Origin: Eutreptiella sp. 'Long Island Sound 2002'
Lineage: Eukaryota > Protista > Euglenida
Direction: 5' to 3'
DNA length: 64,000 nucleotides
NCBI GenBank assembly: GCA_964036045.1
Contig: OZ038378.1
Coordinates: 198,772,001-198,836,000, forward strand
This document shows positions 3,777 to 64,000 of this stretch, one piece after another. A program made the position numbers and the translations under genes. A model generated the notes under the pieces. That model was not told the origin of the DNA, did not search any database, and was given only the letters and a program-made list of their open reading frames with translations. Each line of letters opens with the position of its first letter. Within the stretch, counting starts at the first letter, position 1.

Positions 3777-6700
3777 GCATCCAGCCCCCCCTTTCAGTCC
3801 ATACTTTCCACACCTTTCTTCTCTGCCTTCTCCCTCCCCCGGCCCCCCAACGCCCGCCGGGCATGTGACGCCTCCCAGCGCCTGAAGGGGAGGGGACGCC
3901 GCCAGGGCATGGCACGCAGTCCACTCTCCCCACCAAACGCGCAGTGTGGTGCCCGACCAGCGTTTGCGGAACACCTCGCCTCTATTGCATCCGCACTCCC
4001 GCCCCTCTTTGTACTCCGTCGCCCCATCTCTTCCTCCCTCCCTCGTCCCTACCTCCTCCAAAAGGTCTTTTGGCTGCTGGTACAGTGCAACAGCATTTTT
4101 TCACCACCGCGGAGAACTGGCACCGTGCACCCCGGGGCCGAGGTGCCCAGTGCTAGGACCTGGTTGCCTCAGAGACATGCGTGAGGCGGGGGGGATAATG
4201 TGTAGTGGCATCCTACAACATCGTGGGATTGAATCAAAGTGCCGGCAAAATGCAGCGGTGTACAGGTGCGCAGCACAAACGTTTCCGGCCTGCCCCTTCA
4301 CCAAGTACTAATGAGCAGGGATGACTGGTCGCAAGGTAACACTGAAGGCTGGATGGCAGCCACTGCGACGGTCCTTGGGCAGGCACTTGCGCGTGGCATG
4401 CCGTGCTTCTGTCCCACTTCAACTCAGACCCCCTCCCCTGCCCCCCAGATTTCAAGCCACCGGTGGCCGTGGGCTGGGGTCCCCTTTCAGGGCATGGACT
4501 GCATCACTGCACCATGCCCAGCATACAGTGTTCTAGAAGACTATGCCATACCACCACGTCCATGGAGAGTTATGTGGTGTGCTCAATCGAAATACATACT
4601 GATCATTTATCTAGGACATGCCCAGCATTGGAGGGCTTTAGTGCAAACCCGACGACATAGGGCATGGAAATCAGTCTAGCAATAGAGGGCAAACACACCG
4701 ATTGCAAAGCACAACGGCGCATGCACAACCGTACAGTTTCGTGCCGCTCTAGTAATGCAGTCATGGGGTGGTTTTTGTTTCTTGGTGACCCTCCCGCATG
4801 ATCGCACAGGTCATCGCTGCTCTGGTCATGCGGCCTCGCGCTCGTTGCTGCCCGTGTCTCTCTATTTCTGCTATCTGTTGCTGTGGTGTCCTCACTGTCT
4901 TCTTTCTTTTTTTTTGGTGCGCATTTCATGTTGGTTTTCGTTTGTTGTGGTTGCTCCTGTGAGGAAAACAGGGGGATTCTGTGCACCCCATGAGTGGGGT
5001 GAGAATGGGTGGTTGGGAACACAGAGACCCAAAGGGGATTTGCTGCTCTCGGGAGGGTTTCCAAGTCAGACAACACAGTCAAACGTGGGCAGTCAAACGT
5101 GGGCGCAAAGAGCGTGGCGCATAACCCAACCCAAAGTCAGTCCCCCTTTCAGCTCCAATGATCACAGTGGGAAGATCTCCCCAATGTCTGGGGGATGTGG
5201 CACACAAGGGACCCGTGACGCAGAGAAGAGGAGGCTACGGCTCGGGCCATCACTACACGTGTATCCAGGCTTGCCCAGCCAGGCACTCTCTGGAACCCGC
5301 AGTCATGTCGGCCTTTTGTCCTAAGTCCAGGGTCTTTGCTTGGGCTTTGGACATGCCCAGTTACTTGGTGTGTGACCCCGTCCACCCGATTGCTTGTGTT
5401 GTACAGATCCTGCCCGGAGTGTAGATGGGCAAGGCGCGGAAAATTCATGTACCGGGATGGGAGGCGGGGGTTCGTATCAACCTAGTCTGGAAAGAGGTCT
5501 CATAAAATCGGAATTGCTGCACCATGAGATACCTAAATCAGTGTGTCGTGGGGCTCATTTTCAGTGGTATATGTTGGAGTTGGACTTGCAACCAGCATAC
5601 ACCAGCTGAGACATTCTCACAAATAGTAGGTAGGGTCTTTCTGAGTTGTGCACTGGATGTAGTATTTCTTTCTGAGTTCCATGTGTAGTAGGAGCAAGTC
5701 TTAGCTAGTGGCACATGACACAAGCATAATTCCTACCAAAATGTTGCTGCAAGCTCGGGGCAAGTCTCCACCCCCACCCCCTGGGCCCTCCGAGACTAGT
5801 TTGGGGGCTTCATTGTGGGCGCCTCTTTTGGGGATGCCTTTGCACGCACTGCACATTGCAAAGTTTTAGTATGGCCAAAAATATTGACGCCCTGCTTTGA
5901 ACCTTTTTTCACCGCCGGGAGCAAATGGGGGCCCAGATATATGTTTTATGGTATTCCCCTGTGAGAATTTTTTATCCAGCCACATCACTCCCCTCCTTTT
6001 TGGAGACTAAGGGTTACACAGCCATCCACAAAGCCCCAACTAGCTGGAGTATTTCACCAACACAGAAGATAGACTCGAAAAACACATGAAAATACGAATG
6101 TGATGAAGGGTGTTCATTATGTCACACATGACAGGGCATGAAGGCGATCAAGGTCTAACTTGGAATTGCAGTGAGAACAGTACTGCTAGGTTTCCTAAAT
6201 GTGGCGAAGGCAATGCTATATCTGAATGTCGCACTTGCCATTGAAATATGTGAGGCCTGCGTCGTGTTCATGCTCCTTTGGAGCCATAATATTTCGCACT
6301 GAACCAGCAGGAGATTGATTGGTTCTGGGATGCCTTTTACGCTCGTGCATTGTTTCATGCTCTCAGGAGGTCACGGTCTTCATGGACATGAAATGTGGTT
6401 TCCAGTGTCAAATGTGCACACAGCCCAACATTCCCCTCATTGAACGTTGGAGGGGGAGGTGTCCCGGAAAAGGGGCTCGAACGACCCCCCCCCCCCCCAC
6501 CAAGCATGTGCAGCCGCAGCATGCCGCAGCACCCGTTTTTTGGAGCTGCACATAGGGGTTTGGAAGCATGCCGCAGCATCCAATTTTTTGAGTTCATGTG
6601 TCTGTCTGCCTGTTCCTGCTCTGTCTGCACGGGAGACATTCTGCCTGCCCCGTGTCTCCCCGGTTTGTTTTTATTTGTCTTGTCATGAGTCAGTCATCTG

Positions 6701-34559: not shown

Positions 34560-34909
34560 GGGCCGACGAGCGGAAGTACATAATCAACGTCTCTGCGATG
34601 GAGGGGCAGTTTTACCGCTACAAGAACACGACGCACCCGCACACCAACATGGCGAAGGCGGCGCTGAACATGCTGACGCGGACCTCCGCGGCGGACTATG
34701 CGCAGAACAAGATCTACATGAACAGTGTGGACACGGGCTGGATCACCGACGAGAGTCCGCTGCCGAAGCAGAACCGCAAAATTGCAAAGGACCAGCTGTT
34801 CACTCCGTTGGACGAGCAGGACGCGGCGGCGCGCGTGCTGGACCTGATCTACACCCAGAGTGAGGTCTTTGGCAGGTTTTGGAAGGATTTCCAGATTATT
34901 CCATGGTAA
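34560..34909 (+). CDS. Atypical SDR, exon 5 (last)
   Basis: Acceptor tttgcag|GG. KYIINVSAMEGQFYRYKNTTHPHTNMAKAALNMLTRTSA...MNSVDTGWITDE...RFWKDFQIIPW, then TAA. The five exons sum to 1755 nt, an uninterrupted 584-aa frame. Confidence 0.95.
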
Positions 34910-35042
34910 ATGTGGCACCGTGTGTGTGTGTGTGCTTCTGTGTGTGTGTGTATGTGTGTGTTTTCCTGCTTGCAGGGGTGGACACGACAAGTGGACCGCC
35001 CCACCCGTTGGTGCCTTCTGACCGTGTACCTGCTGTACTACA

Positions 35043-35118
35043 GAAAGGCGCCTAGCCGCATGCTCTTCCACTCCATCTTCTACTTTCTTACGGCCTGACG
35101 AGATTCGTTAGCGACCAG
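35043..35118 (+). ncRNA. Hammerhead ribozyme core, type II permutation, unit 1 (acceptor-containing form)
   Basis: GAAA 35043-46; palindrome AGGCGCCT 35046-53; CUA cleavage triplet (after 35054); stem I GCCG 35055-58/CGGC 35091-94; CTGACGA-G 35095-35102. Preceded by CTGAC and a CAG acceptor (AG 35042-43). Confidence 0.7.
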
Positions 35119-35174
35119 TGCAGTGCTCTGTCTGTCTGCCTGTTCGTCTCGCTTCAATCGTGTGTGTGTGTGTG

Positions 35175-35199
35175 TTTCCGAGTGTCTAATTGTTTTTCG
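35175..35199 (+). other. Genomic relic of the euglenid spliced-leader exon
   Basis: TTTCCGAGTGTCTAATTGTTTTTCG versus the Euglena SL as I recall it (ACTTTCTGAGTGTCTATTTTTTTTCG): about 3 differences over the 3' 24-25 nt. Joined directly to AAAGGCGCC, where sibling copies have CAG|AAAGGCGCC. Confidence 0.85.
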
Positions 35200-35263
35200 A
35201 AAGGCGCCTCGCTGCAATGACAACCATGTTTTCTATGGGGGCCCGACGAGTTGTTTTGACCAG
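35199..35263 (+). ncRNA. Hammerhead core, unit 2 (SL-joined form, core mutated)
   Basis: C-GAAA 35198-35202, AGGCGCCT, CUC (after 35210), short stem GCT/GGC, inner stem CCAT/ATGG. The core reads CCGACGA (35243-49) instead of CTGACGA. Confidence 0.65.
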
Positions 35264-35878
35264 CCCGTCTGCGATCTTCAGTGGGTCGGTGTTCTTGGTC
35301 TCGTTCACTACAGTAGTGTTGTGTAGTGTGTGTCAGGCCTTTGCTTTGTGGCTGGTTGATACTATACCAAGGGGGGGGGGAGGGTCTGAGGATGGTGGGT
35401 GGGTTTTTGTCTGGGTTTTCCCCGATTTTGGGGAAAATGCAGGTACCCCCCCTAGGCGGGGGGGGTGTCCGCTTTTTTGGGTGGGTGGGTGGGTCGCTGA
35501 GCTTGGTAGACCTCCAAAGTCGTTCATGGGCCGAGGCACATTGTGCCACATGGGGATGCTGCCACTTTGTTCAGACCTGTTTTGCTTTACACTTTTTCAC
35601 TTCAGTCTGTACATGATCAGGGACTGTCAGTGACCAGTGGAAGTAGCACAGGTCAACCAAAAGAAGGGTGTGAGTACAAACCCTGTTGCGCACATTTTCA
35701 GCACCTGCTATGGAGTGGTCAACCTGAATTTGTTTCATCCGAAATTGCTCTGTGACCCCCCCCTCAGGGTATCCGGCAGGCGGGCGGGTGGGTCTGAGAG
35801 TGGGTGTGGGTGGGTCAGCCAACATCCTGGGAGGGCCAATTTAACCCCCCCCCCACACTATCACTAAGCAAAGGCCTG

Positions 35879-35915
<37 letters not shown>

Positions 35916-36634
35916 CTCCAGGAATTCTATGGGTCTGGGGAGGGCAGGAGGGGGTGTTACTGCACTTATGCACGCCAGCACTCCGTCGCACTCCGTCCAA
36001 CTGCAACGTACCGCAGGACGGCTGGGGCTGCTCTGCAGCTCCTGAGGGGGTTCCTCCATCCGGTTTTCTTGCGTTGTTCTTGTCTCGCAGTTCTCAACAT
36101 GTGTGTGTGTGTGTGTGTGTGTGTGCGTGCGTGAACAAAACAAGGTACGGTTAAGGCAGTTTACTGTATGAGTTACTCGATGCCTGTGAAGAAGTGCATC
36201 ATTCTTGCTAAAGTTCAAAGCTGGCTAAAGGAAAAGGCGGCATGGCGGGGAGGTGAGTACAGTTCGTGGGTAGGGCCACAGAATGCAGCGCTGCACTCAT
36301 ACTCCCCTGTCTGGAATGATGATTTTGCGGCGCTGGAGGTACTGCGTGGGGCCTGTTGTACACAGGCCGACTGTGTGCGTGTATCCCCCCGGTAACGGGT
36401 GGTATGAGTATTACTTGCTGATTTGAACCATTAGATTTAGTTGGTTGGGCTGGGAGAAGTACAGGGACCTGAGGTGAGGGCTCCAACACATTCCCGCAGC
36501 CAGATGCGGCGCTTAAATGTCATTTCACTCTGTCCTTCACAGGCCCTTGGCTTAGCGCTCAGCGCGGCTGCCGAGGGCTGAAGACGGTAGAGATCGGGTG
36601 CAGGATGTGCCTCTTCCTCTCACCCTGTACTGCA

Positions 36635-36710
36635 GAAAGGCGCCTAGTCGCTGATGGTCATGTCTTTTGTTTGACTGTTTGCGGCCTGACGAGAATCTAC
36701 TTACGACCAG
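36635..36710 (+). ncRNA. Hammerhead core, type II, unit 3 (acceptor-containing form)
   Basis: Pyrimidine tract + CAG (AG 36634-35); GAAA 36635-38; AGGCGCCT; CUA (after 36646); stem I GTCGC 36647-51/GCGGC 36681-85, inner GTCA/TGAC; CTGACGA-G 36686-93. Confidence 0.75.
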
Positions 36711-36999
36711 TGCCTGTGCCTGTCCTGTTCTTGCTGGTTCTGGGCTTTGGTCGCTTTGCGTCATCCACGTGTGTGTGCGTGACTGGTCGGTATCACAAGC
36801 CTCGGTGGGCCTGAAGCAGGGCAGGGGAGGGGCAGGGCCTGACTTTCCCAATTTACGCATGTGACGAGCAGAAACGTTTAATTGTTGCTCTGTCCCGTGC
36901 GGGCCTCTGGTCCAGCGCAGCTGCCTGGGGCTATCCTCGAGTTCGAGGCCATGGTGGTGGGTCAGGATGCGTGCCTCTCTGCCCTCCGCCTGCTCTGCA

Positions 37000-37076
37000 G
37001 AAAGGCGCCTATTGGCGGCGAACATGCTTTGTCTTGTTTGACGACCCAACTGACGAGGATTCTGACACTCGGAAAC
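37000..37076 (+). ncRNA. Hammerhead core, type II, unit 4 (acceptor form with perfect anti-SL arm)
   Basis: Pyrimidine tract + CAG (AG 36999-37000); GAAA 37000-03; AGGCGCCT; CUA (after 37011); stem I TTGG 37012-15/CCAA 37046-49 (fully covaried relative to units 1 and 3), inner CGAACA/TGTTTG; CTGACGA-G 37050-57; GACACTCGGAAAC 37064-76 is the reverse complement of 35174-35186. Confidence 0.8.
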
Positions 37077-37333
37077 CGCGTTCTGCCCGTTTCTCTTGCA
37101 ATGTTGTCTGTGTATGTGTATGTGTATGTGTGTGGGTGGGTGGGTGGATGGGTGCGTGTGCGCGTACACGTGCAGTCCCCACTGGTGACAGACAAAGGGC
37201 AGGCAAATGCGGGCCGTCCGAGTGCGATGCAGGTTGCGATGGCTGATGCGGTCCCTGAGGAGCCATGATCGCTAATGGGCACACTGTTATATATGATCCA
37301 CGACAATGAACGGAGTCGGAGGATAGGTCAGTG

Positions 37334-37334
<1 letters not shown>

Positions 37335-37400
<66 letters not shown>
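37335..37400. repeat. (GT)n microsatellite
   Basis: Directly visible. Shorter GT tracts occur at 34920-34960, 35160-35174, 35885-35913 and 36100-36127. Confidence 0.95.
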
Positions 37401-38856
37401 AGTGTGTGTGCCTGTGCGGGTGCGGGTGCAGGTGCGGGTGCGTGTGCAGTCGCAGACAGTGGTGGCTCGGCGGCACAGCCGGCCCACCACCCATTTCCCT
37501 GGCGATTGTAAAGTTTTGCATAACAATTGTTTTATCGGCCAAGAATGCCGTTGCCAGCCCCGCAGCTGCTGCCTCTCGTTGCCCAGTTGGACAACTGCAC
37601 GTGCCTGTTGATGTGGAAGTGTTTGCTCGCCTTATTGTCATACAGTTGACGGAGACAGCTTTGAGTCACAGCAGGATTCAAGGGCATCCCAATGATCCGT
37701 CCATCGAAACAACACCCAAAAAAACCCACAAAAAATGCAACGGTTTTTTGACTCCAGCACAACCGCAATAAAAAGGCATTTCGCAAAAGAAGACCCCATG
37801 GCGACCAGAGTTGGTTTTGGATAATTGCTAAAGAATTTGCGTTCAACACGCAAAGTAGTATCCTGCAAATCTCTGATATCCACAAGGTACGCAGCGCATA
37901 CATCAGATCCTGATCCTTCACACAGCTACAGTCCGTCCATGCAGCGCCAACGAGGGTCAGAATCAATCATTTCAGCTGCGGTGTGGTATTGGCGCGCGGC
38001 TGTAATGCAGCAGCCCAGCCGTACACGGCTACCATGGGCATCGACGTGTGCGCTGACGGTTCCCCAACTGATTTCTCACCCCTTCTTCGGAAGCTTCCCT
38101 TTGTCCTGAACCCCCTGTCCATGTCCAGGGGGGCGGTGGAACGTTGAGCGAATGTCATAGAAGTGCTGCCTGTAGATAACAGGCCATGAAAGTGCATCGT
38201 AGCAGAAAGAAGAGGAGAGGCATCATGAGGATGTTTTTGAGGAGCCGCAGCCTAGTGTCACCTACTCACCCCCGGCGACGGGGGCTGATGAACATGGGGC
38301 ACCCACCAAGTAGCGGCAAAGACCTCCCACCTGTGCTTTCTTGTCATCCTCCGGTCGTTTCAGCTGTCCCTGCTCGGAAGCAGTACTCCTGTGTGCCCGC
38401 TGGCGTTACAAGGTGGCTGCTGCTGGCATTCGGTGACGGGGTGATGTGCTGCCCCCTGGTTTCCCTCAGGGTTGAGGAGGCCCCCTGTTGCTGATGGAGC
38501 CTTTGCACTGACGTTCATGCCCTAAGCACAGCCCCGAGAAGTGCACATGATCAGGCAATGACGGGCATGGGGAAAGTGGTTGGGCTTTTACCCCAGATCT
38601 AACGGCCAGTTTCCGGGGGTTTCCGCTCCGTTTGACTTCACCATGACTGTGGATGTCAGCTGCCAGAGCACGGTCATCTTTACACTGAGGCCCCAGTGCA
38701 CCCCTCTCCTCTGCCCATGGAATCTGGAGTTCACACGCATCTGTCTCCAGACAGTAGTTACCAGAAGGGGTTATCTAATATACCCAGGGCCTTTTGGACC
38801 GGTTTGAACCTGTGTGCGAATGTGTGTGTATATTTGAGTGAGAGTGTGTGTGTGTA

Positions 38857-60537: not shown

Positions 60538-62586
60538 CCGTCAGGCAGCAAGTGGCTCTTCAGGGCTTCAGCTTCAGTCAATGAGATGTGTCACGTTTTC
60601 CATTCGTTCGTTTCCCTGCTTCATGTCATATTTATTTACCCTCCCTGCGAGAGCAACGCCCTTGCCAGAGCAGCGGCAGGTGTTGTTTCCGCAATTTTTG
60701 AAACTGGGGACTTTGGCGGTTCCATTTTCTGGCGGTCCATGAGTATCCAGCATTTGCTGTGGTCTGGGGCTAGGGACTGTACTTTTGTGATACTGATTGG
60801 TGTCCTGACACCGACCTTCACCCCTGGTTGTCGTCTGAAGGTGGAGTTTGGGGAATCCCCTCACGAATAGTGCATTCATGACGCAACGGTCACCGCTGTT
60901 GTCTTTATGCGATGCACGTGAACAACGCCCTTGTCAGAGCACGAGATAGTGTTGCTCTCGCTAAGGGGGCGGGTAGTTTGGAGGGCTAACCACGGCTCAA
61001 GTTGAGTTACAGTGGCTGATGTCGTCTGTTGACACCTGCATTGCCAGAGTTGGATTGTTTTGAGTGCAGCAGATTGGTTTCCTCAGGATGTGCCTGAGTG
61101 GACGGTTGACATCCACTGGGACCTCCGTCCACCGCTAAAGATGGGGGAACGAGGTTTTCGTTTTCAAACGTTTACTGATGTTGACAATTCACATTCAGGC
61201 CAATATTGGAACGGGATCAGACCTTTGCCTCAGTTGAGGTACACTGGAGCTGGTTGGGGCTGGAGGGGGCACTAGGTGAGTGGGTTGGGTTGCCTCCGGC
61301 CAAGTGTGCCCTAAAATGCCTACTCTGCCCTTCCTGGGGCGGTGGGGGGGGGAGTTATGACCCACCAGGTTGCGGTCTGATTTGAGGGTTTTATTGCCAT
61401 GATCACCCAAGACGCGAAACAACAAGCAACAATACACTCAGAACAGTAAGAGCCTCAGCCTGAAGTGGGTCACACTCATGTTCAAGACAGAGATTTCATG
61501 TGCGGAACCTCCACAGGCCTAACCTCCCATACATTCACCCTCTCGCTCTGCCCATCTGTCAAGTCATTTGTCAGCAGTAGAGCTGCTGGACCGGGGTTAA
61601 ACGCCATATGGCATGCAAGTTGTTGGCATGTGTTCGTGCTGTGGTGAGGCTTTGATTTGGTGAGGAGCATCCCCCCTCCTTGATCTTTATCCAAGCTGCC
61701 CTGGCCACCTGACCTGTAGGTACCGTATATTTTGCACCAATTTCGGTAACATTTTCTGTATCACCGTCAGCGGCCACTTTTTTCCTGGAACTCTCCCTAC
61801 CGGGTCAATGTCAACCGTCATTTTAATTCCATTCTACAAGCTTACTGCTTACCACTAGCTCGGTGACCCGAACCTAGAGTAACCAATACACCAATAGACT
61901 AATACACACAAATAACAGGCACCTGCTGTTTGGAAATGTGTCGTGTGTGCATACCCTTGCATAAGATCCATTCATAGATCCCAATACTGCGCAGCTGCAG
62001 TGTTCCAAGCTGAACCTACCAGTCAACATTCTTGTCAGGAATTGCGCAGGTTGTGGCTACGCGTTGGTAGGGGGGTAGCGGGGATGCCTATGCAGGTAGT
62101 GCAAAATTTAGTACCGGTAGCACTACCAGGACCCCATTTCTAGGTCTAATCCAAATCACTGTTGGCATCTTGTGGACTTGCAGGTACTCCGCCAGGACTG
62201 ATGTTGCCAGAAGTGATGTCGCCCCAGGCCTCTGACAACAGCATTGATCCTTTTGCCACATGGAATGCCTGTGAACATAGAATGCTTGTGAACATTGTCT
62301 GTGCATGGCTCAATTTGCCCTTGGGACAGTTAGGAACGAGATATTTCCATTTTCTGTTTTTACGACGGACAGCCCGGAGTTTATCGGTGGCAGGATTCGG
62401 TTAACCGACGGCGATTTGCGCCTGGCCGCCGGCGGTTGGCCGATGACCAACTGCAGGTACTCGCCGGCTGGCGGTCTGTTTGTGTCGCATGCAAGCACAG
62501 GCTTGTCTAAGCACGGGATGGGCATTGAACCGCTGTTTTGCTTGGACTTTTGGGACCGCGGCCGTGCTTGCGCAAGTGGGGGGGGG

Positions 62587-62876
62587 TTAAATACAAATTG
62601 CTTATTGATTCCGACCTTCGCAATTGATTTGAGAAGCCCCCAAAACTTGACCTCAGGCAAAATCAACACAGTCAACCACGAAGCAAATGGAATCTCTTGT
62701 GTCCCTCGATGTACCGGTTTCAACTCTACTACAGAGTCCTCATCAGCTGCAAACGGAGGGACACAAAAGATTCCGTTTGCTTCGTGTTTGACTGTGTTGA
62801 TTCTGATTGAGGTCAAGTTTTGGAGGCTTCTCAAATCAATTACAAGGGTTAGAATCAATAGGCAATTTGTATTTAA
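62587..62876. repeat. Imperfect inverted repeat, 121-nt arms with a 48-nt spacer
   Basis: 62587-62707 (ttaaatacaaattgc...gtgtccctc) is the imperfect reverse complement of 62756-62876 (gagggacac...gcaatttgtatttaa). Confidence 0.95.
62707..62756 (-). ncRNA. Type I hammerhead core, partly decayed, forming the loop of a long hairpin
   Basis: The minus strand reads CTGATGA-G-GACTCT-GTAGT-AGAGTT-GAAA-CCGG-TA. Core at 62746-62740, 6-bp stem II, GAAA 62721-62718, palindromic ACCGGT stem III, GUA cleavage after 62712. Proximal stem I has two mismatches and stem II has an extra G. Confidence 0.7.
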
Positions 62877-64000
62877 AAATTCGGAGTGCAACTCAAGCGT
62901 CGTGACACGGCCCAAGAACCGCTGGGCGCAAAACCCTGCCACGACCCATGTTAAAAAAATGACATCACTTTTCGCTTAAGCATGGCATTTCTCTGTGCAT
63001 CGATGGTATACAGCAATGCTGCTGAACATAACGCAATTGGGCTAGGGGGGTGCCATCAGCTCCTCTTTAGTTTGCTGCACTGCAGCCCTAACCCACATAC
63101 CACATGACCTGATGTGACTCACATTCCGACACCTGAGCAAGGTTTCATAATCTGGAGAATTCCTCAAGCCATTTCAAAGTGACTGTGCCTGGCCGACAGG
63201 TGGAGGAAGGGGATGGGCGATTATTTTTGGCAAATTGAAGGATCCGGTGGGGAGTTGATGCCAGCCGCCCAGAAAGTGCTGGCTTGGGCTAACCATGTGT
63301 GTCTATTGTACCTGAGCACACCTGCCTTTGTTTCAACATCATTGCAACGGCAGATGTTGAACTTTCAAAGGAAGTTGCAGAATATTTGGGACGCCCTCCC
63401 ACTGTCACGATGCATAGAAACGTGGGAAGTATGCACGTGCACCGGCACAAATGCACACGTTATGAGCATGTGCAAATGTGGAAGGTTGGACCATGTGAGC
63501 CTGTATTATGGGATTCTCTGTTGCTCTGAGCAGTGTAGGGTGCCTGCACTGAGTAGTTCAAATACGATGGCGGCATCATTTTTGGAAAAACGCATTTTTG
63601 ACCCGTTTTTGGTCCCAAAACGGCCCATTTTCAAGGCATTTTTGGAGGGCCAAACCGGGCTACCACGGGCTCACAGTTGGCTAAGGGGGCGCACTTAGCG
63701 CAGTGCGCGCGCAGGCGTGCAAGCGCAGTACAACTATTTGGGCATGTGGCCGTACTAGAGACCCATACTTTGTGATACTAGGGGGGCATCATTCTTGTTT
63801 GAGAGTACGTTTTGATACTTCTTCCACATTGGGGATATAGCATTTTTGGATTTTCACCTAGTTTCACCCATTTCCATTTTTTTTCACTTTTTTTTGCTCA
63901 TTTCCACCACATCCACTCTTTCCTAGGTTGATTTCTCCCCACCATGGGACCTCAAGAAGGCAGAGGTGATGTATCCTTGTTGTTAACCCCCCATCATGGG

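Follow-up and report, generated by a model that had tools for sequence, protein, structure and literature searches.

At positions 62587-62876 of a 64,000-nucleotide stretch of the genome of Eutreptiella sp. 'Long Island Sound 2002' (contig OZ038378.1; the whole stretch is called the window below) lies a 290-nt rod-like inverted repeat that carries a hammerhead motif at its tip. We read this locus as a pair of dead retrocopies, both truncated at the 5' end, that belong to one low-copy retroposon family without coding capacity and are placed head to head with their 3' ends outward. Some 125 nt before its 3' end, the RNA of this family would have a minimal hammerhead of type I. With a palindromic helix III that has no loop, two such RNAs would have to pair for cutting at GUA/C (the slash marks the predicted scissile bond). 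A reverse transcriptase would copy the RNA from its fixed 3' end by target-primed reverse transcription, which would give rise to variable 5' truncation. Use of the 3' cleavage product as template would generate copies of 125 nt, and use of both target strands as primers would generate head-to-head pairs, as described for Penelope-like elements (PLEs). The likeliest mobilisers would be elements with a GIY-YIG domain first and a telomerase-like reverse transcriptase (RT), which are abundant in this genome. To the explanation as a whole, namely dead head-to-head retrocopies of a family with a hammerhead-cut RNA mobilised by PLEs, we assign a probability of about 60%.

Anatomy of the locus

The locus had been described as imperfect arms of 121 nt around a 48-nt spacer with TTAA ends, and both coordinates and fold agree with this description. 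The two arms of 121 nt each are 89% complementary, TTAA forms both outer ends, and the rod fold is possible on either strand, reaching -190.9 kcal/mol on the minus strand (z = -25 compared with shuffled sequences). The features of the locus, in window coordinates, are:

62578-62586, no strand: (G)9 run that adjoins copy A at its 3' end, from reading the sequence; its meaning is uncertain, as G runs are common in the genome
62587-62707, no strand: left arm of the inverted repeat, from an inverted-repeat search
62756-62876, no strand: right arm of the inverted repeat, from the same search
62587-62753, minus strand: copy A, a 5'-truncated retrocopy of 167 nt, collinear with single-arm copies elsewhere (query 3-163)
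62754-62876, plus strand: copy B, a 5'-truncated retrocopy with the 3' tail only, from local alignments to 12 references
62740-62746, minus strand: CUGAUGA box (C3-A9), intact in 7 of the 13 copies holding the region
62739, minus strand: unpaired G between A9 and helix II, a G or A in 13 of 13 copies
62722-62738, minus strand: helix II hairpin GACUCUG-UAG-UAGAGUU, from the predicted fold; 92% of cells paired over 13 copies, without compensatory change
62718-62721, minus strand: GAAA box (G12 A13 A14 A15.1), identical in all 12 copies that retain it
62713-62718, minus strand: loopless palindrome ACCGGU, helix III only as a dimer; self-complementary in 9 of 12 copies
62711-62712, minus strand: predicted scissile bond GUA/C (A17 = 62712, C1.1 = 62711), from the hammerhead numbering rule

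Read on the minus strand from 62746 to 62711, the sequence is CUGAUGA-G-GACUCUG-UAG-UAGAGUU-GAAA-CCGG-U-A/C. The near-exact hammerhead core that had been noticed here is in fact canonical at every core nucleotide: it is complete at 62746-62712, with C3-A9, G12-A14, the pair A15.1/U16.1 and A as H17, so that the cleavage triplet is GUA. The view that this copy is probably decayed does not apply to the core, which is undecayed.

The surrounding helices deviate in part from the original prediction. Stem II, proposed as a plain helix of 6 bp, comprises five Watson-Crick or wobble pairs, extendable to seven, after the one unpaired G (the equivalent nucleotide is A in the L033 copies), and the pair at 10.1/11.1 in the window copy is G.U, not G-C. 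Helix I has one G-C pair at the core, then an internal loop and a distal helix. Beyond the G-C pair two mutually exclusive pairing options exist, either two mismatches followed by four in-register pairs or the register of the arms, which is offset by 5 nt. The two proximal mismatches reported earlier thus hold for the in-register option, and the extension of stem I by the arms is an alternative to it and not an addition. Helix III lacks a loop, so that pairing is possible only between two molecules; its palindrome also occurs as ACUAGU, ACUGGU and AUUGGU, and the count of self-complementary copies given above covers these variants together with ACCGGU. The minimum free energy fold of the 83-nt core region places the core in an alternative pairing and is uninformative for the hammerhead.

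A low-copy family of non-coding retroposons

The whole 2.28-Gb assembly was searched with the 290-nt window sequence and then with a 344-nt copy from another locus. Both searches, which carried out the genome-wide hunt for copies that had been proposed, led to the same set of about 26 loci. Every other family locus has a single arm, and none is an inverted repeat; in about half of them the spacer adjoins the arm (query 3-163) and is followed by a shared interior. For C4, C8, C27, C2, C5 and others, cores and ends were taken from BLAST coordinates only. The 35-nt core of the window copy finds its own locus as the only exact match in the genome and four matches at up to three mismatches; there is no large family that carries this core.

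In the hammerhead sense, all copies have a precise 3' end in common, which occurs as two subfamily termini, ...UUUGUAUUUAA (the window's, and the tail end of copy A) and ...UUUGUUUUUGGAA; the TTAA-bearing terminus reads ...TTTGTATTTAA and that of the other subfamily ...UUUUUGGAA. The 5' ends vary widely, lying at about -930, -460, -370, -300, -265, -215, -167, -125 and shorter. The long form measures about 0.9 kb, with a 5' region of ~550 nt that is seen again in about 8 loci and contains no noteworthy ORF, and no ORFs were found in or adjoining the family copies. Poly(A) or microsatellite tails are absent from the copies, and the flanks of five short copies revealed no convincing target-site duplication. 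A precise 3' end, variable 5' truncation and the lack of coding capacity together point to a non-autonomous retroposon and not to a MITE. A box-B-like sequence, GGTTGGAATCA, can be recognized by eye near the 3' end of the element. ARAGORN found no tRNA in 62000-64000, and a tRNA-derived SINE was rejected on this result.

A MITE-like unit with a ribozyme interior was among the readings originally put forward. Such a MITE, or a different DNA transposon whose terminal inverted repeats measure 121 bp and whose target duplication is TTAA, would explain why TTAA stands at both ends of a long, perfect-looking hairpin, and the sole Rfam match of the locus is to a generic hairpin, the plant family MIR6440, below threshold at 45.9 bits compared with a gathering score of 95. 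We regard this as extremely improbable, however, as the other members are single-armed and 5'-truncated and have only the 3' terminus in common. The TTAA itself is part of that terminus in one subfamily, whereas the other subfamily ends differently, and the sequences outside the TTAA are unrelated and show no duplication. The TTAA at the rod ends is therefore the element's own 3' terminus and not a target duplication.

Evidence for cleavage at the hammerhead

The question whether the motif acts as a ribozyme can be approached by comparing the copies among each other. A consensus built from the family has an intact hammerhead core, and all 13 invariant core nucleotides are found both in this consensus and in the window copy. 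Among the copies retaining the region, U16.1 is kept in 12 of 12, an allowed H17 in 11 of 12 and C1.1 in 12 of 12. The 12 strictly required core positions are 4.0% diverged from the consensus, compared with 10.4% for the 3' tail (Fisher p 0.009) and 13.6% for the remaining motif positions (p 0.001), which are small-sample values like all statistics on this family (about 26 copies, 13 with the core) and ignore shared ancestry. The hammerhead had been staked on conservation of its core above background in other copies, and this is what the family displays.

The strongest evidence is independent of any fold and comes from the 5' ends. Five copies with unrelated flanks start near C1.1, at +1 (L009), -1 (L013), -1 (L019), +2 (L024) and 0 nt (L027), and the right arm in the window starts at +4 to +6. 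About one fifth of the genomic copies thus start at the predicted scissile bond. For at least five ends to fall within 4 nt, the binomial probability is about 1e-5 if the 26 copies were truncated uniformly across 340 nt. The simplest reading of these sequences would be that the RNA is cut at GUA/C in vivo and that the 3' product is then reverse-transcribed up to its new 5' end. On this comparison of genomic copies, we consider cleavage by the hammerhead in vivo probable.

A spliced-leader acceptor at these 5' ends was also considered and rejected: no spliced-leader sequence stands upstream of the cut-site ends, and there is no AG before the site.

The main competing view of these data holds that the motif is non-catalytic and reflects chance or degeneration. 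The cluster of 5' ends would then mark an RT stop at a three-way junction or a module boundary, in the latter version between an upstream part and an independent 125-nt unit joined to it. Several observations are in line with this. Neither at the gathering score nor even at E<=10 did any Rfam hammerhead model match the window copy or the six further copies scanned, so that the Rfam scan that had been recommended came back without a hammerhead. Over 13 copies no significant covariation was observed: the signal did not exceed that of shuffles, and no pair had changed at both of its positions. In helix II and the palindrome 90% of cells are paired, compared with 24-50% in slid registers, which lends weak support given that one of these very sequences served to derive the structure; a palindrome-preserving change from ACCGGU to ACUAGU was noted by eye in L035. 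Further, position 10.1/11.1 is G.U in 11 of 12 copies, and proximal helix I is a single base pair in most copies. Among known systems, the minimal hammerheads of metazoan PLEs cleave poorly in vitro (PMC4209133), and Anolis RNA-seq contains no reads that end at the PLE hammerhead site (PMC11167929). Yet a non-catalytic motif leaves unexplained why the full set of invariant nucleotides is present and the core better conserved than its surroundings, and why 5' ends fall within -1 to +2 nt of a site that had been fixed beforehand by the model, without any leader sequence to account for them. The version with a separate module meets the additional difficulty that variants of the short copies recur in copies with the hammerhead (GGGCUG, for instance, in L009, L013, L024 and L032), which means that the short copies are no separate lineage. 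We therefore consider a non-catalytic motif rather unlikely and retain cleavage in vivo as the preferred reading.

Origin of the head-to-head pair

If other loci are single-armed, what made the rod in the window? Copy A consists of 7 nt of the 5' strand of helix I (UUUGCAG), the complete minimal hammerhead and a 3' tail of 125 nt; the same UUUGCAG precedes CUGAUGA in L034. The homology of copy B starts 4-6 nt downstream of the predicted scissile bond, and it is 91-94% identical to other copies. The two opposed 3' tails form the rod of 121 bp, with the core of copy A at its tip. That the locus represents two head-to-head retrocopies is very likely. The rod is a by-product of two dead copies that stand head to head and not an evolved retrozyme- or viroid-like rod.

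Similar arrangements are found elsewhere in the family. A second abutting head-to-head pair occurs in L033, at 4664-4850 (minus) and 4857-5291 (plus). With about 26 loci in 2.3 Gb, chance nesting cannot account for two such exact pairs, so that pairing appears as a product of the insertion mechanism. In L032 (G000:C15:2846001-2856000, at about 5020-5790) an inverted internal part (-757 to -250) is joined to a direct 3' part (-276 to -28), which looks like a twin-priming-like 5' inversion judging from its sequence. L031 contains two direct copies 1,494 nt apart, with unrelated DNA in between, and at 6142 to about 6315 an inverted family fragment that abuts the 5' end of a long copy. This fragment may be a copy of the 5' cleavage product, with its far end near ACCGGU, in a region too diverged for certainty.

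How were the two copies in the window brought together? One possibility is a one-step snap-back, in which a cDNA folded at helix I, primed itself and copied itself. In both copies the junction falls within helix I, at positions that almost face each other (2.7 in copy A and about 1.4 in copy B), which is where such a process would place it. It would also produce arms of equal divergence, but private changes number 11 in the left arm and 2 in the right (binomial p about 0.02), and copy A is 10.6% diverged from the family consensus compared with 3.3% for copy B. This inequality indicates different templates or different times and argues against simple snap-back of one cDNA. In the L033 pair, moreover, the junction is far from helix I on one side. 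We consequently give snap-back little credence and favor two templates or two events. The complementarity of helix I may guide the joining of two convergent cDNAs into head-to-head pairs.

The pairs could also have arisen if the family were a SINE-like passenger of a LINE or another non-PLE RT, through twin priming or nested insertion. There is no shortage of such enzymes, as a genome search with Pfam RVT_1 gives >61,000 first-look candidates and is swamped by other retroelements. The classical form of a twin-priming inversion is present in L032, the unequal divergence of the window arms is compatible with two separate events, and the family has no sequence match to the sampled PLE-like loci. 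Twin priming, however, yields an inverted upstream segment with a direct 3' segment and not two copies of the 3' terminus as in the window and L033, and the two exactly abutting pairs speak against nested insertion by chance. The copies also lack the poly(A) or microsatellite tail of such a passenger, and minimal dimeric hammerheads are known from PLEs and their derivatives. A non-PLE passenger is thus an unlikely though sensible alternative, and we continue with PLE-type insertion as the preferred reading.

Some further details of the insertion sites deserve mention. A 13-nt miniature of the 3' end of the element, ATTAGTTTTGGAA, is located in L013 about 15-20 nt upstream of the 125-nt copy, whose 5' end falls at the predicted cut site; 4 nt separate the two. 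This miniature may represent a 'tail' of the PLE type or the product of abortive priming. At 63977-63992 of the window, 1.38 kb away from the left junction GGGGGGGG/TTAAATACAA, the sequence TTGTTGTTAACCCCCC mirrors this junction, perhaps by chance or perhaps as the remnant of a terminus beside a C run. Homopolymer runs of G or C occur at or near several insertion junctions (window 62578-62586 and the flanks of L004, L007 and L024), and such runs are common throughout the genome. Chlamys-type PLEs are reported to favor (C)n.

Relationship to Penelope-like elements

The minimal hammerheads of PLEs, as described by Cervera & de la Pena 2014 (PMC4209133), provide the closest comparison. In these motifs A9 is followed by an unpaired nucleotide, helix II is long, helix I is short and ill-defined, and helix III and loop 3 are palindromic, which implies dimeric action; they mostly occur solo in truncated copies and sometimes as two close to each other on opposite strands (PMC4209133). 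The Eutreptiella family shares the order CUGAUGA - helix II - GAAA - UH, a single nucleotide left unpaired between A9 and a long helix II (up to 7 bp), a palindromic helix III that forms only as a dimer, a weak helix I, and the mainly solo occurrence in truncated copies, with occasional close pairs on opposite strands. Its differences are the G.U in place of the conserved G10.1-C11.1, the fact that no copy lies in an ORF-bearing element whereas the PLE motif resides in the pseudo-LTR of an element with RT and GIY-YIG, and its host, a euglenid and not a metazoan, in which it amounts to only about 26 loci.

The manner of insertion bears a resemblance as well. PLE insertions are 5'-truncated, partly in tandem, and often adjoined by an inverted 5'-truncated copy, which results in inverted repeats (Craig et al. 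2021, PMC8557442), and a PLE protein has been found to cleave and extend both target strands in vitro (Frangieh et al. 2024, PMC11167929). In the same work cleavage by the hammerhead was not needed in vitro. Strong 5' truncation and an abutting inverted 5'-truncated copy, in the two pairs of the window and L033, reproduce this signature in our family. Unlike PLEs, the family encodes nothing. PLEs also have a partial tandem that forms pseudo-LTRs, and a 30-40-bp 'tail'; in the family, the two direct copies of L031 are separated by unrelated DNA. Canonical hammerheads are reported to be mostly lacking from Naiad and Chlamys elements (PMC8557442, PMC11167929).

Metazoan non-LTR retrozymes and the Sm-alpha-type repeats of Schistosoma are likewise short and non-coding, with a type I hammerhead and an unstable palindromic helix III, and are regarded as non-autonomous derivatives of PLEs (bioRxiv 10.64898/2026.07.22.740005). 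In contrast to retrozymes, whose tandem arrays give rise to circular RNAs, our family is dispersed, in single or head-to-head copies, and is known here from genomic copies. Core conservation and the PLE-type architecture thus lend support to the Penelope- or retrozyme-like terminal structure with a hammerhead that had been proposed for this locus. The more specific claim, that in a non-autonomous Penelope-like retroposon the dimer-type hammerhead cleaves in living cells and the resulting 3' product is reverse-transcribed and integrated, is suggested by the sequences and put forward tentatively, at somewhat less than even odds.

Candidate mobilising machinery

Which enzymes could have mobilised a family without coding capacity? 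A genome search for GIY-YIG produced 611 first-look candidates; open frames of 1,100-1,200 aa contain many of these. ORFs that begin with GIY-YIG are abundant and about 1,160-1,200 aa long, and three of them were sampled:

L055, 1446-5066, minus strand: GIY-YIG-first ORF
L056, 4123-7617, plus strand: GIY-YIG-first ORF
L057, 4055-7534, plus strand: GIY-YIG-first ORF

All three contain GIY-YIG in the N-terminal third, followed by about 700-760 aa. Sequence searches of Pfam and PDB found nothing for this C-terminal region, and only unannotated paralogues in ENA are related to it. An AlphaFold model of the C-terminal 760 aa, made with 8 paralogues (pLDDT 68), was compared with known structures using Foldseek, and telomerase RTs took the top 13 places (E 1e-5 to 3e-4), followed by the RTs of LINE-1, group II introns and retrons. 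Its Atlas neighbours, which are leads only, include GIY-YIG and RVT_1. The modelled fold would mark these ORFs as endonuclease-first Penelope-like elements with a TERT-like RT in a euglenid. An invariant QFRDN at residues 521-525 of L057:5252-7531:+ is located at the beta-hairpin where RT motif C (xxDD) is expected, and the second catalytic Asp is apparently Asn in all 8 paralogues (35-92% identity).

It had been proposed to look near other copies for PLE ORFs with RT and GIY-YIG; none was found, and no family locus is close to a GIY-YIG match. With no shared sequence between the family and the sampled PLE-like loci and no proximity, mobilisation by PLE proteins is inferred from circumstantial evidence, and we consider the chances for and against it to be about equal.

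A second hammerhead family in the window

The window contains another set of hammerhead-like sequences. Several permuted hammerhead-like retroposon units (GAAAGGCGCCUA ... CUGACGAG) lie at 34900-37420 between (GT)n tracts, and a leader-like sequence precedes the unit at about 35160-35200. Both families are short retroposons of the dimer type, with GAAA directly before a palindrome and UA. They differ in order, which is GAAA-GGCGCC-UA ... CUGACGA (permuted) in the family at 35-37 kb and the standard type I order in the family of the 290-nt locus. The former is associated with spliced-leader addition, whereas the latter has no leader at its 5' ends, and the flanks of the two families have no sequence similarity. 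The earlier judgement that the two are unrelated in sequence and topology is borne out, and the window does hold two hammerhead systems in the form of two different hammerhead-type retroposon families.

Implications

As for the locus itself, it is a dead relic without evident function today. Its lasting interest would lie in the evidence for cleavage in vivo that the sequences of the family provide, and in the extension of such elements to euglenids. The poor cleavage of minimal PLE hammerheads in vitro (PMC4209133) and the Anolis RNA ends (PMC11167929) raise the question whether these motifs cut in cells. A family in which so many copies start at the scissile bond offers a simple, testable system in a culturable protist. 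If our reading is true, it would supply evidence from living cells of a kind that PLE hammerheads have so far lacked. The family would extend hammerhead retroposons of the standard type I order to euglenids and be the first standard-order hammerhead retroposon family in Euglenozoa.
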